The notes under the pieces were generated by a model. It ran no database searches, was not told the origin of the DNA, and saw nothing but the letters and a program-made list of their open reading frames with translations. A program made the translations under genes and the position numbers. 64,000 nt of DNA from Anthoceros angustus. Lineage: Eukaryota > Plantae > Anthocerotophyta. Location: the NCBI GenBank assembly GCA_010909165.1, contig VJWM01000044.1:1054001-1118000 (forward strand), written 5' to 3'. Each line of letters starts with the position of its first letter. The stretch's first letter is position 1. Below are positions 4,229-59,135 of the stretch, piece after piece.

Positions 4229-6140
4229 ATGTCCCTGATGCTTGTCACGGCCAGGCTAGGCAGTATGAAGAAACATATTTTAGTACTTCGCATAAACGAT
4301 CGTATTCTAACATTTCCACGCGAGGCTACAGCAGTACATGTTTCGGAATTCCTGAGCTCATGTTGTGAAGCTCTAGTCACTGCGCATTCCTATTCCGTGT
4401 CCCGCAATGTGCATTTTCTGCTCGCGTGCTCTGTTGTGTGGTGGCATACGCGGCAGGTCTGAAACAAGGGTTTAACAAGGATGCTGCGCTCTCGCTTCGC
4501 TTTGAGGACATGTACCAACTATTGGCCTCACGCCCGGGCAAGTCGCCGAACAGCGGCGTTTTGGAGCATGGCTGGCGGTGCTGCTGCGGGCAACCAAACA
4601 CCGGTAGCTTCATTTTTGCCACACAGAATCTTCCCAATGCTGCAAATGTTAAGTAAGACCTGACTGAGAGGTTGGGGACGTCTTTGAACTCCGTAATTCA
4701 CCTTGGCAGAGGATCTCCTACAGGCTGCAATGAATGCTGTGTCTGTGGAAAGGGGGGTCCTGGTGGAGGAGGCGGCAGAAATGGCCGTCGATTCCGAGCA
4801 GCCTGTCAATGGGACCAGCAGCCCTACATGGAAGTGGCGGCTGGTTTTAGCTTACGATGGCTCTAAGTACTCTGGTTTGCACCATAATCTCCTTCCGCTG
4901 TCTTCCAAGAGTCTGCATCTGCCGTTACAAGGGTTTAAGCTTCAAGCCTGTCTGCAGGATGGCAGCTGCAAGACCGGGATCCTACTATTCAGTTCCATGT
5001 CGAAGACGCTCTCATGAAGTTGACTCGCCTCACCAGGAAAGAGCTCAAAGTGATTGGAGCTGGTCGCACCGACGCTGGGGTTCATGCCTGGGGTCAGGTA
5101 ATTTCCGGCACAACGTCACTCTTGTAATGATGATATTGGGCAGCTTGTTGCAGTCCTGCTGAGGCCTTTGGGCGGTTGCAGGTAGCACAATTCACCACTC
5201 TGTCTCCATTTGAGGAGCTGGGAAAGGTTCATGCCTCTCTGAATGGTATCTTGCCGCATGACATCAGAGTTAGGGAAGTCTCAGCTGTTCATCCTAGCTT
5301 CCATGCTCGCTACTCAGCTCTGTCCAAAACTTACCACTACAAGGCTTATGTTTCACCGGTTATGGACCCTTTTCAGCGTGGTCACACTCTCTTCGTGATC
5401 GAGAATCTCAATGTGGAGGTTATGCAAGAGGCTGCTCAAAACTTTGTGGGAACGCACGATTTCTCCGCCTTTGCGAATGCATCTGATGACGCTGCCTTGC
5501 AAGATCCTGTCAGGACCATCTTCAAGTTTAACGTGAATGCTGCGGTAGGTACGTGAAACCGTGCTTCCCCATGTAATTTGGGTTTACTGTTTTCTGTGAC
5601 TTACAAGGCATTCCGTTGCAGGGACCGGAGGTTTGCTTTGTAGTAGAGGGAACAGGTTTTTTCTACAAGCAAGTCCGCAACATGGTAACGATGTCCGATT
5701 CAACTGCTGTTCCCCTGTGACTTCATGCACCAATATCGGTTGAAACCTAATCTCGTTAATCACCTTGGCACTCTCAGGTTGGCTTGCTTATTGAGATTGG
5801 GAAGGAATTGGTTCCTCCGAGGGCAGTGCTTGATGTTATAGACTCTAAGAGCCGCAAAGCACTGGCATCAGTAGCCCGCACTGCTCCACCTCAGGGCCTC
5901 TACCTAATGTCTGTGAGTTACGATGAAGCCGCTCTCTCACCAGTCGAAGAAGTGCCAAGGGCCAGTCATGGGACGTGGAAACAGCCTCCGAAAGCTGCAC
6001 TTTATAAACTTCCTTGTTCATTGGTAGCCTTCGTAGCCTTTCCTGTCATCAGTTCACTTCTGCTACACAGATTTGGGTTTCTTGATTTGATTGACATTCA
6101 GAAGCTGCTGTCGCTGATGCTAGCTAGCACTGCCTTCTAG
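4229..6140 (+). CDS. tRNA pseudouridine synthase A (TruA) family; 5' and 3' ends uncertain
   Basis: Motifs [67 protein letters not shown] and TAPPQGLYL. Core exons are ~4711-4874, 4958-5097, 5182-5544, 5622-5684 and 5778 onward. Confidence 0.9.
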
Positions 6141-6716
6141 GATGACTCCAGTCACGTCAGAAAGCGGCAGCGCCAAACATGAAGAGGTTCGAGAGTGTCT
6201 CAACAGGTGAAAGGGAAACGACTTCCCTTCTTCGAGGTCAGTCTACCCTCTGAAGTGCAGTTTTGCAAGCTATGGACAAAACAGAAGAGTTTGCTAAACC
6301 AAAGGCGCATCATGCCAGAGCCGAGTCCAGAGGCAAGAGGTAAGAGGCAAGAGCTGAGACAAGAGACTCAAGGCGTGAGGCGAGACCGAACACTAGACCA
6401 GAGAAGAGACCGGGTGAATGAGACGAGAGACAACACCAAAAATATTAATGACAATAGAGACAGTGCAACTGGCAAAAGGGAAGTGTGGTGACCAACACAT
6501 ACACCAAGCATTCCAGAAGGTAAGGGCCGAGACCAGAGCTAAAAGGCAAGAACAGCTGCGAGAAGCGAGAGGCCAGAGGATTTATACCCTCTGGGCATAG
6601 CAGATTCTCGAGAATTATGAACCTACTGTCTACGAAAGGATTACTTAATAGTAAATATATTGAGTATTTTATACTCTATTTAAGCATTTTATCTACATTA
6701 ACTTTAAAACTTGTCT

Positions 6717-7983
6717 AGTAACAAGCCTTGCATGAGAAGCATGCAGCCCTGATCTAGTTAGTAAGTTGTAAATAGTGGTGGTAAGACTTAGCTTAGGGCT
6801 TAAGGAAGGAAGTCTGCTTTAGGCAGTTACTTTGGAAATGATGTAAGCTTCCCCCTATATAAGGAGATGAGGCTAGCCCTAGAGAAGCATCTCTTGTGAT
6901 CCTAGTATGGGGAGCTACACTCTTGAGGATAGGACTTTGGTACCTAGAGGCCTTGGGAGCTCGAAGTGTGAGCATGTCTAGAAGGATCCTAGCACTTGGG
7001 AGCTACACTCTTGTGAGGATAGGACTTTGGTGCCTAGAGGCCTTGGGAGCCTAGGTGTGGCGTGCTGAGGAGGAGGTCGAGGGGAAAGAGCTAAGCTCCT
7101 AGCTTAGGCAAATATGGGGAGCTCTCTCTGATCTCTCATGTATTCTTGTTGACTCTTGCTGAAATAAGCGACGGCGTCGACTCTGAGTCGTCCGTGGAAG
7201 GACGGCGGGCTAGAGGCCTAGTCGGTGTTTGGTGATGTTTTGTCGCTAATCGCTGCATTGCCCACCTCAGAAAAGGGGTGTTACTTGTGGTATCAGAGCT
7301 CAAGATTGAAGCATCTTTTAGCTAGGGTGCTAGCTGGAAATGGCCCATCACAAGTAACACCCCCTTTTCCGCGAGGTGGGGCAGTCAAAAACATCAGCAA
7401 ACACCAGCACTAGGCCTCCAAGTAGCCCGCCGTCCTCGAAAACATCACCAAACACCAGCACTAGGCCTCCAAGTAGCCCGCCGTCCTTCCACGGGATGAC
7501 TCGTAGTCGACGCCGCACTGCCTATTCCAAAGAAGAGTCAACAAGAATACATGAGAGATCAAAGAGAGCTCCCCATCTTTGCCTAAGCTAGGAGCTTAGC
7601 TCTCTCCCTCGATCTCCTCCTCAGCCTCCTCTAGCACGCTCACACTCTAGGCTCCCAAGGCCTCTAGGCACCAAAGTCCTATCCTCACAAGAGTGTAGCT
7701 CCCAAGTGCTAGGAGCCTTCTAGACATGCTCACACTCCAGGCTCCCAAGGCCTCTAGGCATCAAAGTCCTATCCTCAAGAGTGTAGCTCCCCATGCTAGG
7801 ATCACAAGAGATGCTTCTCTAGGGCTAGCCTCATCTCCTTATATAAGGAGGCTCACATCATTTCCAAAGTAACTGCCTAAAGCAGACTTTCTTCCTTAAG
7901 CCCTAAGCTAAGTCTTACCACCACTATTTACAACTTACTAACTAGATCCAGGGCTGCATGTTTCTCATGCAAGGCTTGTTACT
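6717..7983. mobile_element. Fold-back element: two inverted LTR-like arms (6717-7289 and 7349-7983), PBS, 5-bp TSD
   Basis: The arms are reverse complements, roughly 90% similar by eye. Termini are AGTAAC...GTTACT. TGTCT flanks both sides (6712-6716 and 7984-7988). TGGTATCAGAGC lies at 7288-7299. Each arm has a TATA box and an internal ~89-bp tandem duplication. Confidence 0.85.
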
Positions 7984-8506
7984 TGTCTTATACTTCTGTT
8001 TAAAAGATTGTATTTTATAGATATAAATCATTTTAAATTAACTTATAGGGTATATAACTTAATAAATTATATGCCCTAGATCATACATAAGTTCATTCTT
8101 TCCTCTTTCTTATTATATGTAGGTCTATTTTATATATATGTTGTATTTTCATTATCATCAATATGCTCTACCATGATATCCTCATGAAAAGCATCTTCAG
8201 CTTTAGCTTTCACAAGGTGAAGATCGTAGTTTTATCCTTCTTCACTAATAACGTTCAAAGATAAACCATAATCTTTATGATTGTCATACTTAATTGTGCC
8301 ATCTATTTACTATAAAGTTTTATCTTATACACAATCTACAATTGGGATAAAACCAAATGTTCCAACACATGTACGAGTTGAATTTTAGAGGACTCTCCGC
8401 GATTACATTTTGTTCCGTATTATCTGCCATGTTGTCATGATGTGTGCTTTTGCTAGACTGCTCATGCATGGATATCTAAATAGAGCACAAGAGAGGATGT
8501 TGCTTT

Positions 8507-9305: not shown

Positions 9306-10196
9306 TCAGAGAGGCACTTCAGGCGAACTCGCAACGTCCCCTGCACACACACAGAACAATGGCGGGTGCTAACCTGTCAGTCCAGGCGACCTAGCAAATA
9401 CAAAACACACCATTCAGGTGCCTCAATGACTGCCCCTTCACCTTCAGCAGTCTCGCGAGCAACATACGAGGATCGCCTTGCTGGTAGCGCCTGAGGCGCA
9501 GGTGTTGGCTGCATTTGCATGAGCGCCGCAACCACAAACTGCTGTCAGCAAAATGTGGTCACAAGCACTGTACAGAATGAGCCTTGACCGCGAAACATTG
9601 TACCCTTGATATCAGCTAGTATGCCTCCATCTTGTATCCAGATTATGGTGTCACATGATCTCAATTTGAATGATTCAAATCACACCTCCAGTTTTGGGCG
9701 GAGGGTCAGGACAGGCTGTCTGTTATCTACAGGGATGTTTTGCTGCAAAAACAAGGGAACTGGGTCAGATGGGCAACGGAAGGTTTGTTGGTGACCTCAA
9801 GGACAAGCACATGCATCTGCCGTCACACGATGCCAACCTTGGCTAGAGCCCAATCCGCAGAGTCGAAGAAAGCCCGCGATGTTTTCTGCAAAGATATCCA
9901 TGGTGGTATCGTAAGTATTCTCACATGCAAGGTGACGTGCGCAGGTGCTGTTCAGCCACGGATTCAGTAGCTTACCGTCTCCACGAAAGACTTCCTTTTC
10001 GGCCTAACCCCGTATTTCTTCGCTGCTGCCTCCTGCACATTCCAAGGTTGCATGCAACTCAGAGAAAGGCAAGGAAAAATCTACGGTTAGATAATCCGCA
10101 TAAATCCACCTCGGCTATCAGCGTTTCTTCCTCGACAGCGTCATCGGGGCTAGGGCTGGAGACTCCTTTGCTGGTCTGGCCTTTTTCCTCCTCCAT
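9306..10196 (-). CDS. ENSA: Endosulfine / ARPP-19 family protein; exons 10196-10110, 10032-9976, 9885-9838, 9742-9686, 9508-9442, 9340-9306 (last exon tentative)
   Basis: Absent from the ORF track because the exons are tiny. Spliced translation is MEEEKG...EAAAKKYGVRPKRKSFVET-KTSRAFFDSADWALAK-...LRPKLE-PTPAPQALPARRSSY. FDSADW is the plant endosulfine signature. All introns are GT-AG and in phase. Confidence 0.9.
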
Positions 10197-10807: not shown

Positions 10808-11724
10808 ATGGCCCACACTATGGATGTGGACATAGAACCAATATATTGTGTGGAGCAAATTCAAATACCTGCTGGCCTCCCAGAAATGCTTAAGAACTTT
10901 GCCAAGGAAGCCATCAGATCACAGCCTCCACATCTGGAAGAATTTGCCGCAGATTATTTCAGCCTGCTCTACAAGATGACCAAATTGGACTCATCTGCTC
11001 CTCCCCCAACCTTAGTGCAGGTGCTCACTTTGCTCCTATCAACCATCTACGTAGTGCGTCACCACTATTGTCAGAAAATCTTTGTGACTACGATTTTGTC
11101 ATCTCACAGCTTCAAAGATGTTGGGAGGAGCTGCGTGGCATAGAGTTCATGAGCCAGGACGCGATAGAAAGTGCCTGTGCAGCACACGGGGTTCCTAGGG
11201 CAGCTCTGAAGAAAGTTTTCACTCTGCACGATTTCAAATCTGATCTGGTGGATCCCAAGGAGGTGGTGGTGCTTCTTCTGACGTGCCTTGCGCAGGTATT
11301 GAGATCGGTATTGGGGTCAATCAGAAACGCAAGTAGTGCTGCTCCCAGCTGTAAACAATCTTTGCTGTTGCCCAGAGCTTTGTTGCTGTATTGAGGGGCA
11401 TCTTTGAAATCTTCGGGCTAAACAACGGAGGCAAAATTTCAGTGGCTCTCTTCCTCAAGTTACTGTCTTTCTTATCTAAGCGAGACAGGGACATCACCCC
11501 ACAGTGCATTTCCAACCTCACGGCAGAGCTGTAAGTTGCATACGTGATTCATGTGCTAATTCAGGCCTCGACTGCACTGTTTGCGGGCACTGTGGTCTGA
11601 ACTGGTTCTTCGTTATTACAGGCTGGTTCCAGGTGATAAACCACCGGAAATAACTTACACTCAAGTGAAGAATAGCCCCCACATGCTACACTTTTTTGTT
11701 ACTCCAAGTGGAGGTCCAGTATAG
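10808..11724 (+). CDS. RSP11: Radial spoke protein 11 / ropporin-1-like (RIIa docking domain); exons 10808-11020, 11110-11295, 11376-11530, 11622-11724
   Basis: N-terminus EPIYCVEQIQIPAGLPEMLKNFAKEAIRSQPPHLEEFAADYF matches the RIIa domain of Chlamydomonas RSP11 and ROPN1L as recalled. Later exons (SFVAVLRGIFEIF..., ITYTQVKNSP) also track RSP11. Splicing is in phase. Confidence 0.85.
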
Positions 11725-29590: not shown

Positions 29591-29985
29591 TCACGACACT
29601 AATTCTTTGATGAAGGATATCTTTTCCCGCCCGCTTTGTCTCATTGCCTAATTTTTCGATAAGAGAGATTCGCTTTCCCGCTTTAATAAGGATATCGTTT
29701 TCCGTCCGCTTTGTCCCATTGCCTAACTCTAGGATTCAATTTCCTGCTTTGATAAGGATATCTCTTTCTAGGGCGGTTTCTCCTCGGCATCTAATTCTTT
29801 GATCAGGAATATCACTTTCCTGGCCACTTTGTCCCCCTAATTGCTTGATGAGGGATATTACTTTCCCACCCGCTTTGTACTCGACGTCTAACTCTTTGAT
29901 AACCAATATCATTAATGTTGTCTAATTCTTTGATAAGTCCCACCCACTTTGTCTTGGCACCTAATTCTTTGATAATCAATATCCT
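29570..29985. repeat. Degenerate ~45-50-bp minisatellite, about 9 copies, plus one inverted copy at ~30130-30170
   Basis: Unit is approximately AATTCTTTGATAAGGATATCTTTTCCCGCCCGCTTTGTCCCATTGCCT. Confidence 0.8.
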
Positions 29986-30388
29986 TGAATATTGGCTACA
30001 CACCTAACTACATACTATTTATTAATCAAAATGATTAAATCTTCAATCACACCAATAATCTGTTGAACATTTAATAATTTTGATTGATAAATAGATACCT
30101 AATTAGATGCATAGACAACATTAAATAATATTGATTATCAAAGAAATTAGACACCTGGGACAAAGTAGGGATGTCGCTGCTGATCAACTCAAACCCTTCC
30201 TTATTTTTCCGGTCACGGATTGAAATTGGAGCAGTCACAGACCGCTTTCACTCCTCCAATTTTAGAAGGTACAATAGCATCAGGAATAATGGCGAACATA
30301 TTTGCCATATGGGTTCTAAATGTGGCCACTCCATGGTCTCACTCTCCTGAACGAGAAATTTCAAAACTGTGCCCACTCTGGCTGTAAA

Positions 30389-31699: not shown

Positions 31700-34449
31700 G
31701 ATGATTTGCTGCAACCGGTGCCGGTGCCGTTCCCTCGCAACACCGGCTGTGCACAAGACCTAGACGCTCGATTGCAGCAAGTCGCCAGCAGACGCTCGCA
31801 ACCCGCACACGAAATGGTCGCCGGGAGTTAAAAGAATGTTTGGGGCCATACCAAAGTTAGGCTATCCCCTCCACACTGGCTGGGTCACGGAACTTCCGAA
31901 AATTATGTAAAACTCTGTAGGAGGAGACGATGCTGTATTCGCTCAGTATGTTACATCTGAATTGGTGAAAGGAATGCAGGTGCACTGCTAAACTGAGAGA
32001 AGAGGACTGTAGTCCGATGTGCTCACGCAAAGCTCGCCGACTGAGGAATCTGGGAGAGAGCCTCCATGGTGGACAGCTTGGATGGCTACGTTCAAGCCTT
32101 GGGCTAGAAGGCAAGGACTTGCAAGGAGGTCAAGTTTTTGGCACGAAACCATGAGTGCTGGCACCGGATGTTTGACACAGGTATTTGCACATCTCAGCAG
32201 GCGGAGGCACGTCGATTCTAGGAATCAGGTCAAGATAAGTCAGCTTGGAAGCCTCAACCTGCTCTTCCCTGCCAAGGAAGAACAGTGGTTTATGATGGAT
32301 CGGAGACGGGCAAGCCTGACTGATGTGCACCTAAACTAGGAGAGGACAGGAACCTTTGGCATACGTGAGAAAACCATACAATGGAGAAGAACGACGGAGG
32401 CATCGTGACGAAGAGTAGCTGCCATGGCGACAGAGTTTCGCCTCCCTCGGTCAGCATGCAGTTTTCAGTCTGCTACCTTTGCATATAACGCCTTTCACCA
32501 AACCGAACGAGTACAGAGTCGCACAACCAAGTCGGGAGCTGCCCCTGCTGCGCATCTTCCGGCTTGGTAGTTCGACATTGTACAGGCGGGTGATCGGAGA
32601 TTTCCGTGAGGACATACATCCGGCGGACATCCTGCATGCAATGCCATAACCCAAACTCCTAACACGGCACCCAAGAGCAGCGGGACATAGTCGAAGCACA
32701 CATGTACCAAGGACATCCCGTAGTAGGGTTTGCCAGACTGTTTCAGGAGTTAAAATTTATGACCCATTTATGCGACAAATCTCTATGCGCTAGGGATTTG
32801 ACGCACACATACATCTTGCAATAATTACGATAAAAAAAACATGATGTAATTTACTAAGATATGTACCTGATGCATGTTATAATTTTTTAACTGAAACTAT
32901 AAGAGATTTGTTTCTATGATATACCGGCAATGGTGATTTCTGCTTTGTAACCTCTAAACAATCACCCCTATTTTCCAAGAAATTCAAGCATTGTAGTTTC
33001 TGATTTTCTACAAGCGCTATGATTAGACATCAATTCCGACAAAATAAGGTAGTACGAAGCTCTATATGTGCTTCCCAACAAGCCTATGGTTGCCCTCATG
33101 GGAGCAAAATTGTAGTTTCGAGTATGAAAGGAACTTCCTCAAAGGTTTCGATTGAGATGCCCTTCTTCGGCCTCTTTCGAAGTGTTTAGGGGACGAGCTC
33201 ATGGGCAAAACACATGTGGAGATGCAAGAGGATCATTGCTAGTCACCATGAGAAATCCAAGGAAATTTGACATATAGTTCATCAGATACATCAAGAGAAA
33301 CGGCAGGGCCCTTCACAAAATGGACCCACCATGGCAGCAAGCTTCCATCCCAACTATCCTAATCGAGTTCATAAAATTGGCCCCTATGTACAAAGTGGAG
33401 ATCACGCAGTCCGTGCCGCGCATGCGAAGCTCCTCCTTGAGTAGTTGCCACCAGTAGACGCAGGACAAGAAAGCCCCCCTGTCTTTGAGGCAACCCGAGG
33501 AAACCTGTCCTCCCATCCATTGGCCACCACCCACATTCCTCATCCCGGTCTCCCGTAGCTGGGATTATCTCTCCTACCACTCACATATTAGTTCACTAAA
33601 AATCTCAGAGGCGGAGGACACGAGGATACCCGGAGCCCACGAGGAACCCATCTCTCGGCCTCCGACTCTCCTCCACTCCCCTTGCTCGCTGTACTTGCAT
33701 AGTTAGAGGCGCAGTCAAGCTTTTCATCTAGAACAAATACAAAAACTCTCGAACAACATGTAGTACAGAACCGCACTTCCAATGTGGAGACGAGAAGTAG
33801 TAGCATGCCGCCAGCACGAACAAGAACGACTTCCTCAACTCCTACTCCATCTCCACACTCAGGTGGAAAGTTGGGATATGCCACCATTGTCGGTTCCCCT
33901 CGAACATATAGTGGATACCCCCCGGGCCCGAGGGTAGCACATTCTCGAAAGCCCGTGGAATTACAGAGCATAAACTCGCAAGGACAGTCTCTGCCTAAGC
34001 CTCTGCCAAGTCCGCCCACCCAGTCTCCATTCCCACCCAGAGCTTCCCAATTTCCATTTCAACCTGGTTCCCCCCGAGTCTCCAACGGTGGAAGACCTCC
34101 ATCACCGGGTGCCCACGCTGATTACGGATGGCAACGCTGATCAGGCCACTAAGGCAAACTGGTTCATGCGGGCTCCCATATACATGATCAAGACCCTACT
34201 GTCCAATATCTGGACCTCGACCTCAAAGAAATTTGTTTCCCTCCCACAAATAAGGAACATGGCATGATCTCGGGATGAGGTGATGCATGCTACACATCGC
34301 CGCAATTTGAGTGGGTCAACAGCCCGATGAGCCCAGGCTACACTTTACACTGTCAGTGCAAGCTCTTGTGCATGCTAAGTTCCGCCCTCCCATGTATGTC
34401 ATAAGGCAACCTGGATGCGAGAGTACTGGGATGATTCAACGGTTTTGCT

Positions 34450-36505
34450 GGGCTCTTCCAATGCCCAAGAGGCCCCAGCTACTCCACTTTTGTCACACAC
34501 ATGTCCTGCTTGAATCAGCCCACACTTGCATCATCATAAACTTTCAAGTACTAAGACTCCAAAGTTTTTAGCAAACGTGGCTGCCATAGAGGTGGTTGCA
34601 CTTGAAGAACTGTGACATTTGTCTCTTCCAGCAAACACAGGTAAATTCTCCATCTTGAGTGGGACCTCGTGCACGTGGATTGGATCGCCTAGCCCTCCGT
34701 GCTCCAACTTCGCCCACCAAGTCTACTTCTTCTTCCTCTCACCTTATGACATCCTCCCGTGCGTGTGCACTTTCTCCCGATCCTCCATAAAGTAAGCAAG
34801 CTCATCAGTATTTGAATCTATGTCCTCCAAGCTTGAAGCCCGGCAACTTCCACTCCTACTCCCACTGGGTTTTGGTCTACCGTTCATGGACTGCTAAGTG
34901 TCCCCCACTACTTCCTCGCTCGCCCTCCGAGAGCGCCTCGCATTCACAATTTTCGCCGGCTTAACGGAAGCCTCAACTGAACCGCACTTGCAATTTCAAC
35001 CATGAATGTAGCAATGCACCAGCCTCTCCTCGTGCCCATCTTCGCCATCGCTTGCTTGCTGGGCTGCACCTTTTGGCACCTCAACTCTGGGCGCGGACAG
35101 GACGAGCACTCTTGGCAAGGCCAAACGAGGTGTGGGCTGCCGACGTTGGCACGGTGATGAGCGGCACTTCGGGGCCAAACACGGAGCCATGGGCCGTGTG
35201 GCGCGGGTGCCACATGATTGCGTCCATTCCCACCTTAACTACAGTAATAAGCGTAGTCGGATCAACCAAGGACCGTTGTCGCAACGCCCCGCTAATCATG
35301 AAGCACACTTTGATGAATTGCATTCATCAACGCCGGCGGTGATGTCAGTCCGTATCCTCACGCCCACCCTTGGTTTTGTAGAGCCTTGATTGAAACACTG
35401 TCGCACAAAGCCGGGTTCCCATGCAGAATGAGCGGACTCAATCACTTGGCTCGGATTGGCAACAACCCATAACCTTTCTTTGGGCTCTTCCAATGCCCAG
35501 AAGCTACTCCACTTTTGTCACACACATGTCTGCTTGAATCACACTTGCATCATCATAAACTTTCAAGTACTAAGACTCCAAAGTTTTTAGCAAACGTGGC
35601 TGCCATAGAGGTGGTTGCACTTGAAGAACTGTGACATTTGTCTCTTCCAGCAAACACAGGTAAATTCTCCATCTTGAGTGGGACCTCGTGCACGTGGATT
35701 GGATCGCCTAGCCCTCTGTGCTCCGGTAACTTTCGCCCACCAAGTCTACTTCTTTCTTCCTCTCACCTTATGACATCCTCCCGTCGCAGCGTGTGCACTT
35801 TCTCCCGATCCTCCATAAAGTAAGCAAGCTCATCAGTATTTGAATCTATGTCCTCCAAGCTTGAAGCCCGGCAACTTCCACTCCTACTCCCACTGGGTTT
35901 TGGTCTACCGTTCATGGACTGCTAAGTGTCCCCCACTACTTCCTCGTTCGTCCTCTCCGAGAGCGCTCCTGCATTCACAATTTTCGCTCGAAGCGGAACG
36001 AGCGAAGCCTCAACCTGAACCGCACTTGCAATTTCAACCATGAATGTAGCAGCTGCAAGTTCAGCCTCCCCCTCCTCGTGCCCATCTTCGTCATCGCTTG
36101 CTTGCTGGGCTGCACCTTTTGGCACCTCAACTCTGGGCGCGGACAGGACGAGCACTCTTGGCAAGGCCAAACGAGGTGTGGGCTGCCGACGTTGGCACGG
36201 TGATGAGCGGCACTTCGGGGCCAAACACGGAGCCATGGGCCGTGTGGCGCGGGTGCCACATGATTGCGTCCATTCCCACCTTTCTTAATAAGCGTGGTCG
36301 GATCAACCAGGACCGTTGTCGCGCCCGCTAATCATGAAGCACACTTTGATGAATTGCATTCATCATGGCGTGATGATGTCGGTCGTATCCTCACGCCCAC
36401 CCTTGGTTTTGTAGAGCCTTGATTGAAACACTGTCGCACAAAGCCGGGTTCCCATGCAGAATGAGCGGACTCAATCACTTGGCTCGGATTGGCAACAACC
36501 CATAA
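34450..36505. repeat. Tandem duplication of a ~1.03-kb unit (34450-35476 and 35481-36505)
   Basis: Near-identical copies from GGCTCTTCCAATGCCC to GGCAACAACCCATAAC that differ mostly by small indels. Decayed ORF of unknown identity. Confidence 0.9.
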
Positions 36506-36679
36506 CTGCTCTTTGGCGAATCATGTACTGGTGCTTACGTTTTGCATATGTATGATGGCTAAATCGAGGTCCACATGGGAAACCGTGGCAAAACCATTTT
36601 AGCCAAAAGAAATTTATGGCTAAATCTTCCTTCCCCAGCAAAACCAGAGTTCACGGTAGAGAATCTTTGTAATTTGGCA

Positions 36680-43963: not shown

Positions 43964-46900
43964 GAAACCATACTCCGCCATCTCCTCCAGCGTCGGGCAA
44001 CCTCGCGATTGCGATTTCGCCTGTGTCCTTCTCCATTTCGGCGACGCCCGCCTCCTGTTCCATCGCCTTACTTCCTCCGTCTCGCCAATGTAGCCGAGCC
44101 GCTCTATCTCTCGCTCGTGATCCGTGATCACGCCCGCAGACACCATTCCTATCAATGGTAACTTGAGCCGCAGCCTGTGGTCTCTTTTGGGTCTTCCATC
44201 TCCGCCGTTGCTCCACCACGCAATCGAGACCAGGAGATCCTCCATCTCCTTGTCGCTGGCTTCCTTCTCCTCGGCATGGCCGGCCCGCACTCGCCTCCGC
44301 CTCCTCGCCGCCTTCACTGGCTTCACCGGCCAAGGGCTGGTCCGCCCGCCGCCCGCCAGTCGCGAGCCTTCTCCTTGCGCCCGCCTCCTCCGCCTCCGCC
44401 TCCTCGCCGCCTCAGAGGTCACCGCTTGGGCCTCTCCTCAACACAGCCACCCAAAGAAAAGGAATTTAGTCCGTCCTATCGAATGGACCAGATTTCCCTT
44501 CGGCCTCCCGGCCTCTTCGATGCGGCCGAGCCTTCCTCCTCGCCTCCCGGGCCTCCAACCGCCTCCGGAGGAGCACCATGCGCCTCGGTGGCTTCTACTC
44601 GGGTCTTCTCATGTCCAGAGACCCCAAAGCCCGTGTCTCTTCCACGGCCGCCACCGTGAGACCCCAAAAGTCCGTAGAGGGAGCGGGCATCTCACGGCCG
44701 CCAAGGGACCTCCACCGCACCGAGCAAGTCCTGACTGGTTCTCCGGACCTAATCAGCCCCTTAGGTCCCGATTGCCGAGGTCCCGAGCTTCACCTCCTTG
44801 GCCCTCTTGGCCGCCAATTCCTTATTCGCCTTCGCCGGGCCTCCTCCGCCCGCCGCTACCCTCTCCTGCAGAGGTCTTCACGCTTGGGCCTCCTCAGGTT
44901 CGCCCACCTCACCCAGAAGGAATTTAGTCCGTCCCGAATGGACCAGACTTCCTTCGGCCTCCCGCTTCGATGCGGCCGAGAGCTTCGCCTTCCTCCGCCT
45001 CCCGGGCCGCCAACCGCCTCCGGAGGAGCACCATGCGCCTCGGTGGCTTCTACTCGGGTCTTCTCCGTCTCGAGACCCCAAAGCCGTGTCTCTTCCACGG
45101 CCGCCACTGGTGAGACCCCCAAAAAGTCCGTAGTGGGAGCGGGCATCTCACGGTCCGCCAGGGACCTCCACACTGCAGTCCGGAGTAAGTCCGGACTGGG
45201 TTCTCCGGACCTAATCAGCCCCTTAGGTCCTGATTGCCGAGGTCCGGAGCTTCACCCTCCTTGGCCCTCTTGGCCGCCAATTCCTTATTCGCCTCTTCGC
45301 CCCGGGGCCTGAGGTGAGGGGTTCGAGCCGACCCCTTGCCTCTCCCGGCTGGGCGATGGATCGGCCGGGTTTGCCGCCGGACCGCTCCTTCGGCCTTCTC
45401 TTTTCTCTTTCTTTACCCGGCAGGCATGTGCACCGCCCGAGGTGCGTTGGCGGTGGCACCGCCTTCCGCCTCTTCGATGCGGCCGAGTTCGCCGGGCTCA
45501 CGCTGTGGCCGGGCGCCGGGCCGCCCGCCTCCGTCAGACCGGGCCGCCCGTGGGCACTGGAGGAGGGAAGCGGGATATCTTCCCACACTTCCCTAGGTGG
45601 TGAGGGGGTCCATTCCCACGATGGAGTCCCAGATCCTTCCGCCCCTCCTCCCGACCTGCTTGGGGGGTCGGGCCTCTCCTCAGCGCCTTGCCCGCCTGCT
45701 AGGTAGGCCGCCAACCCTTTCCGAGCGCCCGCCTACCTCCCCATCCTTCAGAGGTCGTAATGTCCCCACATGGATCGTATGGGGATAGTCCGGACGGCGG
45801 TGGCTTCCTCATTATGGGCCTCCTCAAACTGGCGAAGATGATCCTTCCTACCGCCTCTTGCCTCAGCAACGCATGCAGAACACCAAGAATTATCACCAAG
45901 GTGATCCACCTTGGTGAGCAAGTTCCGTGGACAATGATCCGGGCTCGCCTCACCCTTCATCCCCAGGTCCGATATCAACCACCGCTGGTTGTCCGCCGCG
46001 TCGGCCGACGCGCCTTGCCGCCTATCTTTCCCTCGCCTTGAGGGGCCTCGACCACGCCCATCCTCCTCCGCTGGGCGGCCAGGCCGCCTCGTGACCTCCA
46101 AGGTCCATCTCCTGATCCTCCGGAGGTTCTTGGACCGAACCTCCTTGTTGGCCGCCAACATCTTCCGGCGAACTCCCGACCAGAGTGACATCACAAACGC
46201 CCGCATACCGAACACGCCTAAGTGCCACTCTTCACTAATCCTCCCGCCTCCAGCCATGGCCCAAAGTCCGGATAGCGCCGGTCACAATGTTGCGCCTACC
46301 AGTTCCATGGCTCCCATACTCAGCCTTTTGGGTCCCATCGCCTTCTTCTCCTTCGCCGAGCGCCTCGAGACCGCGCACGATGCGCCTCTTCGCTGTCACG
46401 CTCCAACCTCAACGTGAGCCGCCAAGATGCCAAGCTGCTCAAAGAGATAGCGCCAGAGGGTTGCGGAGCGCAAGAGACTGCGAGAATTGTCTCGAGGTCG
46501 CACTGAGAAATGACCCTCCTCGTCGGCCGCTGGAGTAATCGGAGGGTGCCTCTTCTCCCAGAATCGCCAGAGGTCCGCATGGCTTACCTTACGCCGCTGC
46601 ACCGCCTTACGCCGCTGCATGCCCGGGCGTGAATACCGCTATAACGGCCCCTGCAAGCAGCCCGCTCGCTGCATGCCCGACCTCCACTCGGGGCCGTCCA
46701 CGTGGCGCCCGTCTCACGACTCAACTTCTAAATTACTCGGCATTTATCCTGCTTTTGACCCGGAGTGGGTCCGACTTATCCTGCCTGGCTTGTCATAGGG
46801 TCCGGGTTACCTACTCCGAGTCCGGAGTATACTCGAGCTCCGAGCACCATCCGTGCTTATTCCTCCTTCACTTATTTTACTATTCGCCTACGAAAACAAA

Positions 46901-49900
46901 ACCCAACTTATTTCCTAACCCCCAAGGGAAGTCCGTAGCCCACATACTCCCCTTCTCATCTGTTGGCGTCTCCGCCAACACTAGGCATGATACTTTTTCA
47001 CCCGCCACCCGTTCACCCGAGTGGGCAGCAATTCACCATCCAACTGCCGAAGCTGAACGGACCCATTGGCGTATACCTGTACCACCTGGTAAGGTCCCAT
47101 CCATCGCAAGTGGAGTTTACCCGGGAAGTGCATATGGCGGTCATAAAGAAGGGCCAAATCTCCTTCCTTCACATACTCTTGAGTCCGAGCCTCGGCCATG
47201 CCACAACTTGCGCTGACTGCCGCTGCCGCGCCTTCTTCCCGACCTCCACTCGGGGCCGTCCACGTGGCGCGCTCGGTCACTCACGACTCAACTTCTAAAT
47301 TACTTTCCTGGCGTACTTATCTGTTTTGACCGGGTGGGGTCCGGACTTATCCCGTTACCGGTGCTTGTCGTAGTCAGGGGTCCGTTACCTACTCCGGAGT
47401 CCGGAGTATACTCCGGAGCCAGTCCGGAGCACCATCCGTGCTTATTCCTCCTTTCCGCCTTATTTTACTATTCGGACCTACGAAAAAACAAAACCCCACT
47501 TATTTCCTAACCCCCAAGGGAAGTCCGTAGCCCACATACTCCCCTTCTCATCTGTTGGCGTCTCCCCCAACACTAGGCATGATACTTTTTCACCCGCCAC
47601 CCGTTCACACGAGTGGGCAACAGTTCACCATCCAACTGCCGAAGTTGAACGGACCCATTGGCGTATACCTGTACCACCTGGTAAGGTCCCATCCATCGCA
47701 AGTGGAGTTTACCTGGGAAGTGCATATGGCGGCTGTCATAAAGAAGGGCCAAATCTCCTTCCTTCACATACTCTTGAGTCGCCTTACATCATGCCACAAC
47801 TTGATTACATGCAGTTGCATTCTCTGCTGCGCCTCTTCTTGACCCTCCGTATGCTGAACAAACCCTAGCAAGCGCTCCAGTTGGCTTTCCTCATCCGTTA
47901 AGCATCTCTCCATCATGACACGGAGTGTTGGCACCTCAAACTCTACGGCATAACGGGTGAGTGCCCATAGGCTAGGTAATACGAGTTCTGTAGTTACCTT
48001 CTCCGCTCAAGGCCCATAGCGCCGATGGTAGCTTTGTATCCTACCAGGCGCATAATTGACCGTGAAGCTTATTCAGATGCGCGATAAGTCCGCTGGTCTT
48101 CTCACAATCCGCTGGCCTTCGGGTTGTAGGGGCCGCTTACATGTGTGATGCCAAATAGTCCGTCATTGCGCTATCACATCATTGAGGAAATGAGTTCCCC
48201 TATCGCTACTGTACCGCAACGGACACGCATTTTGTGATGATGTTTTCAGAGGAATTTGGCCACCGTGCTTGCAGAGTCCGGCCCTAGTTGCGACCGCCAC
48301 CCACCGGTGAGTCCGCTGCCACCAAGATGTACCGCTTTGTGTGTGCCTCGTGGTCAGATAGGTCCGACGGTCGATGCCCCACTTCTCAAAAGGCGCTAGT
48401 GCGATGGGCACCAACGGCCATTGTGTTGTGGAGTTTGGCCCGATCCGCCGACAAGCATCACATCTCTTCACAAATTGGTGCGTTTCCCATACATGGTGGG
48501 CCACCAAGACTCACCTCCAAGATTTTCTTGGTGGTGACTACCGCATAATGTCCACCGCCCAGCCCTTCGTGCATCCCTTTATTACCACCTGCCTCACTGC
48601 TGGAGGTACCTCCGCTCCACGCCTGCCCCATCTTAAAGATGCACTGTTATACAACCTAAAAGGACGGGCGTAGTGCACAAAGGCCTATCGCTGGACCCGG
48701 TTCAATCCGTTTGGTAGTTCCATTTCCCATAGGTACCGCCCACTCCCATAGGTGGCCCGCCTCCCTTCTCCGCTCACGGTGGGTCTGCTGCTCCAAGCTT
48801 AGGGTTTGTCCCCGCACTCCGCTTCTTCCTCTATCGCCGCCACCAGTTCTTCGTCCGGAAGGCATCCTCCGATCTTGCAGACAGTCCCGCTTTTAACCCG
48901 ACAAGAAGTTAGCGCTTTTGGTGTTGCCGCCTTGCGGTCTCTACCTCAAAGGTGAACCTCGTGAGTAACAGTAATCCACCTCGCACCGCCTCGACAGACC
49001 GCTTTGTTCACCAAATGCTTGAGCCAAGTGATCGACATAAAACACAAACTCATTGGGCGTAAGGTAATGCAATTTCTTAATCACAGATACCATCCCCAAT
49101 GCCTCGCGCCCGTAGTAGTGTACCTCCGCTCGCATGCGTGAGCCGCCTTCCGCGTAGTAGATTGATGGTCCCTCCGCTTGTCGCCCTTTTGGCCGAGCAC
49201 CACCCAATGGCAAAGGTGGCACATCCACATACACATGGAATCGCTTTCCCGGACCTTTCAATACTGGGGCACCGACTGTGGTTTGTAGGTCTCAATGCCG
49301 CCTCCGTGTGTCCAAGACCACTCCTCCTTCCTGAGTAACTCCGTTAGCTTGGCGGCCCGCTTTGCGAAATCCTGGATGAAGCGCCTGTAGTAACCCACCA
49401 TGCCTGTGAACTCGAACTCCTTCAAGCTCTTAGAGGTGGTCAGATGAATGACCTTCACCTTGTCCCGATCCACAAGCATCACATCTCTTCACAAATTGGT
49501 GCGTTTCCCCATACATGGTGGGCCACCAGTACCCAGCCTCCAAGATTTTCTTGGTGGTGACCTGTGCTGCATAATGTCCACCGCCCAGTCCTTCGTGCAT
49601 CCCCTTTATTACCACCTCCGTCTCCGCCTGTTGGAGGTACCTCCGTTCCACGCCGTCTGGGCCCATCTTAAAGATGCAGCCGTTATACAACCTAAAAGGA
49701 CGGGCGTAGTGCACAAAGGCCTGTCGCTGGACCCGGTTCAATCCGTTCGGTAGTTCCATTTCCCATAGGTACCGCTCCAATTCCGCATAGGTGGGCCGCC
49801 CTCTGCGTCCGCTCCCCTTCTCCGCTTCTGCTGTGGGTTCGCCGTTCCCAAGCTTAGGGTTTGTCCGGCTGCACTCCTCTGCTTCTTCCTCTATCGCTGC

Positions 49901-50910
49901 CACCAGTTCTTCGTCCGGGAAGGCGTCCTCCTGATCTTGCAGGACAGGCTCCGTTTTAACTGGACAAGAAGTCAGCGTTTTGGTGTTGCCGCCCTTGCCT
50001 GGTCTCTACCTCAAAGGTGAACTCCTGTAGCAACAGAATCCACCTCGCAATTCGCCCGGACAGATCTGCCTTGTTCACCAAATGCTTGAGCGCGAAGTGA
50101 TCGACATAAAACACAAACTCATTGGGCAGAAGGTAATGCCTGAATTTCTTAATCACAGATACCATCCCCAATGCCTCGCGCCCGTAGTAGTGTACCTCCG
50201 CTCGCATGCGTGAGCCGCCTTCCGCGTAGTAGATTGATGGTCCCTCCGCTTGTCGCCCTTTTGGCCGAGCACCACCCAATGGCAAAGGTGGCACATCCAC
50301 ATACACATGGAATCGCTTCACTCCCGACCTTTCAACACTGGGGCACCGACTGTGGTTTGTAGGTCTCAATGCCGCCTCCGTGTGTCCAAGACCACTCCTC
50401 CTTCCTGAGTAACTCCGTTAGCTTGGCGGCCCGCTTTGCGAAATCCTGGATGAAGCGCCTGTAGTAACCCACCATGCCTGTGAACTCGAACTCCTTCAAG
50501 CTCTTAGAGGTGGTCAGATGAATGACCTTCACCTTGTCCTGATCCACCTCTATCCTCTCGCCGACACGCGTGTCCCAAGAAGATCCCTCCGCCATACCTC
50601 AAGTAGCATTCTGGGATGTAGGCACAGTTGAGTCTCCTTACAACGCTCCGAGCACTTCCGCAGATGTCCAACGTGCTTGTCCTCCTCCCCGTGCACACAA
50701 AAGTCGTCCAAGAACACCTCCATAAAGTCCTCGTAAAATCCCAAGACGCTGGTCACCATCCTATAAAATGATCCGGGTGCCTTGCCATCCCCAAGGCGCT
50801 TGCTTGTGGCGAACGTCCCCACTCCGTGGTGAGCGTTGTCTTGTCCACCGACTCCCTTAGGTGCGCTTGGTTGTAACCGGAGTAGCCATCCAAGAAGGAG
50901 TAGGTACCCG
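43964..50910 (-). mobile_element. Ty3/gypsy (Athila-like, non-chromovirus) 3' part: RT C-half, RNase H, integrase and long 3' region; internally duplicated and truncated
   Basis: YSFLDGYSGYNQ, VFLDDF (50703-50714), REALGMVSVIKKFRHYLL...SGRIARWILLLQEF, YWWPTMYGETHQFVKRCDAC, PFEKWGID, SDRGTHFLND and GKLHLRWMGPYQV...VNGWRVKKYH (twice). Confidence 0.92.
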
Positions 50911-50934
50911 TTGTCAGGATCATTGGACTTCAAG

Positions 50935-53900
50935 GTTAAATTAGTAGGGTTTTGTTTTTGTAGGAGTAAAGGATAAAATGAGGCGAATGAGGAAATAAGC
51001 ATGGGTAGCACTCGGACGGCGCCTGAGTATTCTCCGGACCGGAGTGAGGAACAGGACCTACTATGGTAGGTGCCACGTAATGGATAAGTCCGACCCACCA
51101 AGACCCAGGATAAGCCTGCATAACTGGGAGTTGAGCCGCGGAGCGACCGCGCCGCCACGGGCAACTCGAGTGGAGAACGGCATGCACCGGGCCAGATCAG
51201 AATCCCTGCCGAGGCGTTATAGCGGTATTCACGCCGCGCGGGCGTAAGACCGTAGTACGCGGCGTAAGGCCGAGTAAGCGGAGGCGTAAGGTCGTAATAA
51301 GCCATGCACTGCGCTACATTGTGTGGAAGAGGCGCCCGCCTGGCATTACTCCCAAGGAGCGGCCAAGGGGAAGGTCATTCTCACGCAGCCTCGAGACACC
51401 GCGATCTCTTGCGCCCGCAACCGCTCGGGCGGTATCTCGTGGACACTGACGCTCACGGCTCACCGCTGAGGTCGGAGCAACAACGCGCAAGAAGGCGAAC
51501 GTGCTGCCAGCCTCCAAGCTGCCATGCAAAACCAAGGGAGGAGAAGGCGATGGCACCCAAAAGCTCATGGAAGTTTGGGAGCCATGGAACCTTGTGGAGC
51601 GCAACATTGTGACCGCGCTATCCGGACTTTGGGCCCCGGCCCAGGAAGGTGAGAATTGGTGCAGGAGTGGCATTTGGATGTGTTCCATGGTCCGACATTT
51701 GACACACCGTCCGGAGTTCGCCCGAAGATGCGGGCAATAAGGAGGTGCGGTCCAAGAACCTCCGGAGGACCCAAGGCGATGGACCTTGAGGTCCCGAGGC
51801 GCCTACAACCGCCCAAAGGAGGAAGAGGGGGAGGAGCCCTCAAGGCGAAGGGAAGATAGGCCGGAAGAATGCCGAGGCTCGACGCAACGGACCACCAACG
51901 GTTGGTCGACATCCGACCGCTGGACCGAGTAAGGGCGGTGGCCCGGATCATTGTCCATCGAACCTACCAAGGTGGATCACCTTGGTGATAATGCTGGTAT
52001 TCCCGCACGCTACCGCAATGGGAAGAGGGCGACTGGGAAGGATTATTTTCGCCTCGCTTAGCTGTGAGGCTCGCAAGCTCAGACCGAGAAGCCTCGCCAT
52101 CTGGCCGCCCCCATACCGATCCATGTATGGGGCATTTCGAGCTCCTCAAGGAAGGAGAGCTTGAGCGAGCGCCCGAAAGGACTGAGGCCCCGCCAAGTGG
52201 AGCGGCAAGGGCGCCGAGGGAGGAGGCCGATCGCGAAAGCCAAACGGACTCGGAGGAGGACGATCGAGGATTCCGACTCCATACGCCCTGAACGGACCCC
52301 TCACCACCTGTGGAAGTATGGAAGAAATTCCCGCCTCCTCCTCCGTGCCCCAACCAGAGCCAAACAGAAGGCCCGACCTCAGCCCCCGCCACCCACCACT
52401 CCTACCGAGGAGCCTCACGACTGGAGGGAGCCAAGAGACGCAAGACCACGGCTACCAACGCTGCACCCCTGGCCGGTGCCAAGATTCTCCCCGCCTGAGT
52501 GGCAAGAGGCGGAAGCAAGAAGGAGGGCGTAAAGGACGCGCCTGTGGAGCGGAGGACACGGCAATGCCCACACTCGAGCCGGTCCTGCCGACAGGGGCAA
52601 AAGGCTTGCTCCCTGACCCTCACCTCCTCCGAGCCCTGTGGAGGAAAAGGGCTGAGAAGGAGCTCGCGCCAAAAGGGCCAAGGAGGGGAAGCCCGAGCCA
52701 AGACTCGTGACCTAAGGGTCCCGATTAGGTCCGAGAACCCACCGACTTACTGACAATGTATGGAGGTCCTCTGATCAGGATGCCGGCCCCGCCACGGACT
52801 TTGTGGGAGCCTCACTCAGCCGCCGTGGAAGAAACACGGCGTCCTGCCATGGATCAGATGCCTGGGGTCTCGGATGGCCGAGAAGACCTGTGGAGGTAGA
52901 AGCCACCCGAGGCGCATGGTACTCCTCCGTGAGCTTGAGGAGCCCAGAGGCGAGAAGGAAGGCCAAGCTCGGCCGGATTGAGGAGGGAAACGCCGGAGGC
53001 GAGAGGGAGGTCCGTCCATCCGCAAGGACCGACTAAATTCCTTCACCGGAGGAACACAAGGCACCAAGGAGGCCCAAGCGCGGCGAGGACCTCCGCAGTG
53101 AGGGGCGAGCGCAGAAGCAGAGCGGAGCAAGCGTAGCCGGGCGCGGATCCGCGAGGCACTGACCGACCAGAGCCAAGCCGAGAGGCTCAGTGAAGGTGGC
53201 CAAGGAGGCGAGGCCAAGGCCGATCGCGATCACTATCGGCGTGATCGGAACCGTGGAGGGAGGCGGCCGAGAGAGCCACGCCAATCAAGGCCGAGCAAGT
53301 GGTCATGGAGCACGACAAGCCGCAACACTGAGGCCAAGACCGGAAATCGGGACCCTGTGGCGCACAAGAGGTAGAAGGGAGGCGCAGGAGTTGGAGGACA
53401 AGAAGGACACCTTGGAGTTACAACCCAAGACGCGGAGCAAAGCAAGGAATTCTCAATGGGAGAATCCAGACTTCGAGAGATAGAGCGCCCACCGCCTCAA
53501 GATGGAGCAGGAGGTGGCGAGCAAGCGCGACCAACCAGCCCAAGAAGTCGCCACAAGGAGGTGGAGGATCTCCTGACTCGGCCCCGGAGGTGGAGCAGGT
53601 GAGAGATGGAGGACCGCAAGGAGACTTTGAGCCGCAGCCCAAACTATCATTGAGAGGAATGGTAGTCTCAGGACATGGTCGCGAACGCGACCGGAAATAG
53701 AGCGCCCCCTGGCGACGGAGGGCAACGATGGAACAGGAGCAGGACGCCGAGATGGAAAAGGGCTGGTGAAGCCCGCAGCCGTTGCCCACCGTCTGAGCGG
53801 AGATGGCGGAGTTAATGCGTAATGGACAAGGAGGCGAGGGCGCCGGAAGGCATAAGAAGCCGTCCACCGAGGAAGTCGGAAGGGCAGCTGCGTTATGGCG

Positions 53901-55803
53901 GGCAAGTCGGAACCAACGGGAGGGAGTTGGAGCAAGTGAGCAACAATGACGATCATGGAGGTGACCGAGGCAGCCTGGCAGCAAGGCCCAAATTTATCCA
54001 ACTCGGGAGGTGGAGCAACAAGCGGGCAACAGCTCACCTGAGCATGGCTAAGGGAGTATCGGTGCTCGGGCACACGTGGAAGAGGCAATCCAGCAAGTGG
54101 ATTCGGACTTTGCCTATTACCACACCGAGCTCCCTGGCTGAGGCCTCCGCCGCCACAGAGCCCCTGGAAGGCCCTGAGGGGAAGAAGGGCAGACAAAGAC
54201 AGGACCCTAGGGGCCCCTGCTTGGAGACGGCACAAGGAGGGAGCCCAAGAGGAGCGGACGCAGGACCCCAAGGTAAGTTCACCACCACCCGATCCGCAGG
54301 GGTGAGGGGCCCGCAGGGTGCAACCGGGGAGCCAACCCAACCAAGACAAGGGTCTGGGTAAGGAGGAGGACCTAGCAAGACGAGGTCCACAGTGAAGGGG
54401 TCCGAGTTGGAGATCGGACCTGAAGTGGCACGGACCGAGGTCCGAACCCCGAGACGAGGCCGACCCACCGGCTGACCGGAAATAAACCGACCTTGGAGTT
54501 CAGTTCGAGTCGAGACCGACCGAGGTCCGACTCGGCAAGAAGGAGGAGTCCCTCTCGACTTACGCTAGGGGAGCGATACCGGGCCCCACCGGAGGGGACC
54601 CACGGAAGGCTGTGAGGAGCGGACGGACCCCAAGGTAAGTTCACCACCACCCGATCCAAGGGGGGTGAGGGGCCCGCAGGGTGCAACCGGGGAGCCAACC
54701 CGACCAAGACAAGGGTCGGGTAAGGAGGAGGACCTAGCAAGACGAGGTCCACGGAAGGGGTCCGAGTTTGAGATCGGACCTAAGGGTCCCGATTAGGTCC
54801 GAACCCCGAGACGAGGCCGACCCGGACTGGAAATAAACCGACCTTGGAGTTCAGCCCGGAGTCGAGACCGACCTCGAGGTCCGGACCAAGAAGAAGGAGG
54901 AGTCCCTCTCGACTTACGCTTAGGGGAGCCGAGACAGGGCCCCACCGAGGGGACCCACGGAAGGCTGGGAGGATGACGGTAACGGCCGCCGCACCGCCGC
55001 AGAGCCAACCCGGCTGTGATTCCGGGAAAGGAGGGGTCTACCGGATCATCCGATTGGGTGCGCCGCAATTGTCGTGATGGAGATTGACCACCAATCCCAA
55101 GGCGGAACCGACCTTCCCACCCCACCCCGGCGAAGGAGATAGGAGGAGGGAAATAGGATGGTAGGCGGCGATTAGGCATACCGAGCCGCCCGTAATAGGT
55201 GTAATAAAGACGCCGACCTAGGCGTAGTATAAGAGGGCCGGGCCCTCAATAAATCATCTTTCCTTGGTGTTGATGCTGCTCTGCGCACTGTGTGTCTTCC
55301 CCGATAACGTGAGTCCCGAGTCACCGAAAGGTGCACGATGACCGAGGGATCGATCGTGGTCCCGTGACGACCTAACGTGTTGTGTGTGTGGAGTGGTGAT
55401 CGGGGACCCGTGCTCGTCGAGCCGCGACCCAACGGACCGAACGGGTGAGCCGGAGGGACTGGAGGGCGGGGCGCCCGGACGAGAGGCCCGTGGAACGACG
55501 AGGAGGTCCGGACTGTAACCCGCTGCCTTCCTTAAGACCGATAAGTGTAGTGTGAGAGAGGAGTGGACGAGAGGTGAGAGAAGAACGAACGAACGGACGC
55601 GAACGGTCCTTAAACGCTTGGCCATACCGAGGTAGCAGTAGTAGCTAGACGTGAACTAAGGGTGTGTGCGTTAGGACCGAGTGACGAAGTAAGACGAAAC
55701 CACCGAACGCCGCAAACGGAGCCCTGCGCTATCTTGGGAACGAACTCCTTCCTACAACGACACGGATTGTGGCGCGCCTGGCCGCCAAGAAAGTCGCGCC
55801 ACA
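50935..55803 (+). mobile_element. Inverted copy of the same family's post-integrase region plus LTR, inserted within RT
   Basis: Reverse-complement similarity to 43964-46900 and to 60350-63470. Ends in ...GTCGCGCCACA at 55803, matching the LTR ends next to the PBS copies. Confidence 0.75.
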
Positions 55804-55809
55804 CTCCGG

Positions 55810-58800: not shown

Positions 58801-59135
58801 GCCTCGCCTGTGTTCTCGAGTTTGACAAGACGAGCCGCCCTTGATCGATCCCACTCAATCTTTCCAAGAAGGCATCCTTCAATGCTTCGAAGGTCGTAGG
58901 GGAGGCGTTACAGGCGGCCGGTACTTTCTCATGCCAGCTGGCATTTCGGGACCCCTTGGAACAGCTGGATAAGCTGCGCATCCGAACCTTCTCCGTTGAA
59001 GTTCGCCTCACACAAGTCCTCACGGTTCTCAGGCTCTCCTTCTTACCTCCAAAGAGGAGTACTCATCCTCCCGATCCACACTTACCTTCCTACTTGGCTA
59101 CGGAGCGATCTCATTCCCAAGAACGGCGCCAAAAT
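55810..59135 (-). mobile_element. Ty3/gypsy 5' part: PBS, gag with CCHC knuckles, protease, RT N-half
   Basis: PBS TGGCGCCGTT at 59122-59131. CAVCHQHGHSKANC and CWNCGNPGHYSNAC zinc knuckles. Degenerate xTGSGVNLI protease. WVAPIVVVPKKQQGQIRVCQDWRKLNAATEKDHFPMP. Confidence 0.92.

Follow-up and report, generated by a model that had tools for sequence, protein, structure and literature searches.

Two inverted copia-type LTRs within one target-site duplication in Anthoceros angustus: probable one-step insertion of aberrant cDNA

A 1267-nt element at positions 6717-7983 of a 64-kb window (the whole stretch of DNA that was analysed) of Anthoceros angustus contig VJWM01000044.1 carries two inverted long terminal repeats (LTRs) inside one 5-bp target-site duplication (TSD). 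On balance, we consider it probable that the element arose by a single, old, integrase-mediated insertion of two LTR-bearing reverse-transcription by-products of one copia-type family, which had been joined head to head. Judged from its sequence, the element would belong to a known kind of event, the aberrant insertion of an LTR retrotransposon, while an inverted LTR pair within one TSD is apparently undescribed; we found no description of such a pair in the literature. As far as the evidence goes, this is one decayed curiosity of no demonstrated function, and most likely an old accident of reverse transcription.

The sequence-only reading that first pointed to this locus had described two inverted arms of about 570-630 bp around a 59-bp spacer, each bounded by AGTAAC...GTTACT and carrying a TATA box, with a tRNA-iMet primer-binding site 2 nt past the left arm and the pentamer TGTCT flanking the unit on either side. 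Each of these features was recovered (Table 1). The arms measure 569 and 631 nt, both are bounded by the proposed motifs, which extend to a perfect 7-bp terminal inverted repeat (AGTAACA/TGTTACT), and both contain a TATA box. The primer-binding site is an exact match to the 12-mer TGGTATCAGAGC, which has no further occurrence on the two strands of the 64-kb window, whether exact or with a single mismatch. The distance from GTTACT to AGTAAC is 67 nt; the inverted repeat continues beyond the LTR for exactly 4 nt on both sides (TGTG/CACA), and subtracting this extension from each side leaves the proposed 59 bp, at 7290-7348. Both U3 ends point outward and both U5 ends inward, with the left arm in the polarity of a 5' LTR. 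The two halves differ in what follows the LTR: the left half continues with TG, the full primer-binding site and 49 nt, the right half with TG and TG only. The description of the unit as non-coding also stood, since none of its open reading frames matched any Pfam family.

Table 1. Features of the inverted LTR element and its flanks, in window coordinates.
Feature	Position	Strand	Remarks
Left TSD copy	6712-6716		TGTCT
Left arm	6717-7285	+	Complete LTR, U3 outward, AGTAACA...TGTTACT, 569 nt
TATA box, left LTR	6856-6862	+	TATATAA, ~140 nt from U3 end
Tandem duplication within the LTR, both arms	6898-7059; mirror ~7623-7801	+ (6898-7059)	~88-90 nt
Candidate poly(A) signal, left LTR	7163-7168	+	AATAAG, identified by reading; degenerate in right arm
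Dinucleotide between U5 end and primer-binding site	7286-7287	+	TG
Primer-binding site	7288-7299	+	TGGTATCAGAGC, complement of the tRNA-iMet 3' end
49-nt segment	7300-7348	+	Probably the parent's 5' leader; small 6-bp hairpin AGCTAG/CTAGCT
Inner end of right half	7349-7352	-	CACA, mirror of the TG spacer and the primer site's first TG
Right arm	7353-7983	-	Complete inverted LTR, U3 outward, 631 nt
Tandem duplication, right arm only	7388-7487	-	51 nt, 2 copies, 97%
TATA box, right LTR	7839-7846	-	Near-palindromic TTATATAA
Right TSD copy	7984-7988		TGTCT

The iMet primer site, the position of the TATA box, the terminal inverted repeat and the 5-bp duplication together identify the arms as copia-type LTRs. 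The same evidence, with the primer site at the left arm, a TATA box about 140 nt from the outer end, the 7-bp terminal repeat and the TSD, bears out the proposal of a retro-derived unit with two U3 ends outward. Two hallmarks of Ty1/copia elements are thus present, namely an iMet primer site no more than a few bases from the 5' LTR and a 5-bp TSD. Absent are the direct orientation of the LTRs, TG...CA termini, gag-pol and a polypurine tract preceding the 3' LTR; both U3 starts adjoin host DNA instead of such a tract. The unit resembles a TRIM in being small and non-coding and in having an iMet primer site and a 5-bp TSD. TRIMs, however, have short direct LTRs and a polypurine tract and are reverse-transcribable, whereas the LTRs here are inverted, about 570-630 nt long, and have no polypurine tract at a U3 start. 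With a solo LTR it shares an LTR sequence lacking internal genes within a 5-bp duplication, but a solo LTR is one LTR left by LTR-LTR recombination, has no primer site, and differs in this from two inverted LTRs with the primer site kept.

The TSD is the one observation that speaks for insertion in one step. Its two TGTCT copies are direct and not inverted, which marks the arm ends as the true ends of the element. Within the window, a 5-mer matched itself at this spacing at 0.13% of positions, an empirical chance of 0.0013 or about 1 in 750, and a one-step event would be the most economical account of the match. The suggestion that the unit integrated as one piece was upheld in this sense: we found no route by nested insertion or recombination that gives a flush inverted LTR with the same 5-bp duplication.

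The same duplication could also be coincidental, if the structure was built stepwise in the genome by two oppositely oriented insertions of one family, or by an insertion followed by inversion and deletion, and was then trimmed to two LTRs. A divergence of ~5-9% between the arms, together with their indels, could mean that they came from two source copies, and a chance of 0.0013 is small yet not negligible over a genome-wide scan. We nevertheless regard a stepwise origin as unlikely. The right arm taken alone has unlike flanks (TCACA inside, TGTCT outside), and crossing-over between inverted LTRs preserves their orientation and cannot flip a 3' LTR in place. The deletion, moreover, would have had to end at the last base of an LTR on the outside and no more than 2 nt from the primer junction on the inside.

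A quite unlikely alternative keeps integrase but starts from larger substrates: two full-length cDNAs would have co-integrated through their U3 ends with their free ends joined, and the resulting ~10-kb palindrome would then have lost its centre, so that two 5' LTRs were left. This sequence of events predicts the same outer geometry and TSD, and the primer-side bases kept by both arms are as expected of 5' LTRs. Long palindromes are unstable, which would favour loss of the centre. It requires an additional large deletion, however, whose right endpoint would by chance lie 2-4 nt from the U5/primer junction, and the element contains no remnant of internal sequence.

Where the right half ends is informative for the preferred reading of a single insertion of joined cDNAs. 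On the standard view of reverse transcription, synthesis of the minus strand starts directly behind the terminal CCA of the tRNA. Read as its mirror, TG plus TG gives CA, the tRNA end, followed by CA of the spacer; the 4-nt extension of the repeat beyond the LTR therefore places the end of the right half at the junction of tRNA and minus-strand DNA, within the last two primer bases. This inner end would then be a natural cDNA terminus, at which a random genomic deletion would rarely fall. We take its position at the primer junction as the best internal sign that the element was assembled from reverse-transcription intermediates.

The 49 nt at 7300-7348 are most simply, and probably, the parent's 5' leader; the assignment is presumptive and comes from a single locus. 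Other sources for the spacer were considered and discarded. A copy of a tRNA received no support, as ARAGORN detected no tRNA in the window and an Rfam search of 7250-7400 (E up to 10) returned only spurious hairpins from miRNA models. Against what we take to be the plant tRNA-iMet sequence, there was no convincing match to the spacer beyond 12 nt, a comparison that serves as a lead only. As a decayed palindrome, the spacer scored the same as shuffled sequences, and as filler from nearby DNA it shared no 11-mer with any other part of the window.

How the two halves might have been joined at their U5 sides can be pictured in two ways: by a strand switch, which includes fold-back, or by end joining. 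In the first, a growing plus strand that had advanced 49 nt beyond the primer site would switch at the 4-nt TGTG/CACA match onto a plus-strand LTR, which could be its own (fold-back) or that of a sister cDNA. Conversion of a folded-back single strand into a two-ended duplex would be a step without an observed intermediate. Alternatively, two fragments might have been linked by end joining. The product in each case would be a linear DNA of 1.27 kb with a U3 terminus at each end. Integrase could then treat the two U3 ends as a normal U3/U5 pair and join them to positions 5 bp apart in an AT-rich site, which would generate the TGTCT duplication. The duplication itself is directly visible, and it is the basis on which we propose the action of integrase. 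Two U3 ends may be acceptable to the enzyme because the terminal 7 bp of U3 and U5 are the same in this LTR, with agreement at 17 of the 30 terminal positions. Integration through two U3 ends in vivo is assumed here on the basis of in vitro work with retroviruses. If the insertion took place in one step, the site before insertion would have read AAAACTTGTCT-TATACTTC, containing TGTCT once and neither arm. Subsequent decay would have consisted mainly of C-to-T type changes, typical of methylated repeats, together with indels.

Comparable events are known in part. Autointegration gives rise to rearranged unintegrated retroviral DNA. Self-priming and fold-back synthesis by reverse transcriptase have been documented in vitro (PMC6088434). 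Such products resemble the present element in that inverted, LTR-containing DNA arises by strand switching or self-priming, but they are dead-end or circular and were seen in vitro or as unintegrated DNA, whereas the element is apparently chromosomal and flanked by a host TSD. They also have R at their centre, and the present unit U5. In Triticeae, aberrant template switching has been described to yield multi-LTR units that were inserted as one piece, in direct arrays (Sabot and Schulman 2007; PMC1950507). The likeness to those complexes lies in a multi-LTR unit within a single TSD, with formation before integration inferred here. They are arranged as LTR-internal-LTR-internal-LTR and carry coding domains, in contrast to inverted LTRs that lack an internal domain and have their U3 ends outward.

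We next consider the termini of the LTRs, for which AG..CT had been proposed. Canonical TG...CA termini are absent, and the arms run AGTAACA...TGTTACT. The AG start was seen directly; both outer ends being U3 starts, it is the one end that this locus shows directly. That U5 ends in CT is indicated by the terminal inverted repeat and by the gap of 2 nt before the primer site. In retroviruses, such a gap is the position of the two bases that integrase removes. We found no description of the LTR termini of hornworts in the literature. The pattern TGTTACT-NN-primer site was sought in metagenomes and occurred at 43 loci. These belong to unrelated repeat families, and none clearly starts with AGTAACA; on AG..CT ends they give no firm indication.

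Two groups of these metagenome loci have features of their own. Seven contigs (L004, L007, L012, L017, L023, L024 and L041; for instance L007:400-860) contain a TRIM-like element with direct repeats of ~190 nt ending in TGTTACT, an iMet site that follows the first repeat after 2 nt, and no more than ~80 nt of internal sequence. In aquatic and marine contigs (L003, L005, L008, L014, L028, L030, L038, L039 and L043), TGTTACT-TA-TGGTATCAGAGC lies within a repeat that is conserved for >3 kb upstream, and this upstream homology indicates that in these contigs the motif is not the terminus of an ordinary short LTR.

Comparison of the two arms speaks to the age and reality of the structure. A global alignment puts their identity at 91.7% over all aligned columns: 519 positions match, 47 do not, and 68 columns contain gaps. 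When sites fewer than 6 columns from a gap are disregarded, 22 of the 446 that remain differ (4.9%). The substitutions comprise 36 transitions and 11 transversions; in the outer 340 well-aligned columns the counts are 12 and 1, and the K2P distance is 0.04. CpG observed/expected is 0.37-0.42 in the arms and 0.76 across the window. The transition bias and the loss of CpG probably reflect methylation, a pattern equally expected of any repeat. If the arms were identical at birth and diverged at usual plant rates, the insertion would be a few million years old, a figure to be read as an order of magnitude only. An apparent increase of divergence from the outside to the centre (p = 0.0002) fell to p = 0.048 when gap-adjacent columns were removed and was set aside; it was mostly spurious, owing to misalignment beside indels and to the CpG-richer inner R-U5 part.

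These differences, about 5% at secure sites plus indels, and the depletion of CpG imply that the structure is old and real and not a fold-back read artefact. Palindromes are a known class of artefact, either of assembly or of reads folding back as chimaeras, and long terminal inverted repeats with a short TSD would formally also suit a DNA transposon. We judge an origin by either of these means most improbable. Among the differences between the arms (47 substitutions, 68 gap columns) is a 51-nt duplication, whose presence in one arm only argues against an assembly or read chimaera, and the site lies within unique, gene-bearing sequence with a TSD. With regard to TIR transposons and Foldback elements, the unit has long inverted arms and no transposase; the exact 12-nt primer site next to the arm, together with the LTR-like internal layout, points to a retroelement.

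The sequence-only reading had also raised the possibility of a non-autonomous inverted-LTR family, here one that a copia partner would mobilize. The TSD and the intact termini do resemble those of a mobile unit. Replication of such a unit is mechanistically unlikely, however, and the proposal found no support. Under the standard model, its RNA would end at the 3' side in the complement of R, so that minus-strand strong-stop DNA would have no annealing site; the first strand transfer, and hence canonical replication, would fail. In addition, neither U3 start has a polypurine tract next to it, and no second copy of the element was found in the 64-kb window. A 28-mer identical in both arms gave no match in metagenome, prokaryote-genome and viral collections (the host genome not among them), nor did a word search at the protein level using a 60-aa open reading frame from an arm, the host genome again being outside its scope. 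We therefore hold a mobile family to be very unlikely, and the element would be incapable of copying itself.

A further suggestion, that transcription from either arm yields a ~570-bp double-stranded RNA hairpin, had to be revised. The 1267 nt are predicted to fold into a single extended hairpin (minimum free energy, -1057.8 kcal/mol), as would be the case for any inverted repeat. Since transcription from an LTR promoter begins downstream of the TATA box, the stem would contain R-U5 only and be ~400 bp long, and the AATAAG of the left LTR would have to be read through. Hairpin RNA, the proposed siRNA source, is thus possible from this sequence only by way of read-through transcription.

In maize, Mu killer is reportedly an inverted duplication of a DNA-transposon end, with genetic proof of silencing. 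The present element is alike in being an inverted repeat of a transposon terminal region and a candidate source of hairpin RNA against its own family; it differs in deriving from the LTR of a retrotransposon instead of a DNA transposon and in being known from sequence alone. An insertion of this type would supply the promoter and leader of a retrotransposon as an inverted repeat from the outset, the type of structure that is said to have begun silencing in the Mu killer case. It is tempting to go further and suppose that AG..CT-ended copia elements of the plant lineage repeatedly make head-to-head LTR dimers and integrate them via two U3 ends, as a regular by-product of replication and a built-in hairpin trigger that silences the parent family. 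We think this conjecture doubtful; were it true, recurrent U3/U3 LTR dimers would form an undescribed class of retro-derived palindromic insertion. Should the one-step reading be correct, an LTR integrase would be able to insert DNA with two U3 ends in vivo, and dead-end products of reverse transcription could reach the chromosome.

The element lies between the 3' ends of two convergent genes, in agreement with its earlier placement between TruA and ENSA. On its left are exons matching Pfam PseudoU_synth_1 (TruA type; 5176-6140, + strand), and on its right is an exon matching Endosulfine (9826-9951, - strand). These neighbours were examined exon by exon and not as joined spliced models. Further genes in the window encode a plastid-type Mur ligase, EF-hand proteins and a 949-aa PPR protein, which is consistent with a land plant. 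The Mur ligase gene (MurE-like; 6-1700) has the middle and C-terminal domains in an intron-bearing, eukaryotic context and fits the plastid peptidoglycan pathway retained in non-seed plants. Beside the endosulfine gene, an open reading frame at 10808-11143 showed a weak match to the RIIa dimerisation/docking domain (E 0.0014, below the Pfam cut-off).

Other repeats were noted in the window. A tandem duplication of ~1.03 kb with 93% identity occupies 34449-36516, and ~190 nt at 29961-30150 are self-complementary (79%). From 44000 to 64000 extends a GC-rich block (55-64% GC) with strong strand skew, whose open reading frames of 240-300 aa matched no Pfam family. It is composed of tandem units of ~1.0-1.2 kb with 70-90% identity and includes inverted blocks, at 45.5-46.9 kb versus 50.9-52.3 kb and at 54.0-55.6 kb versus 60.5-64.0 kb.
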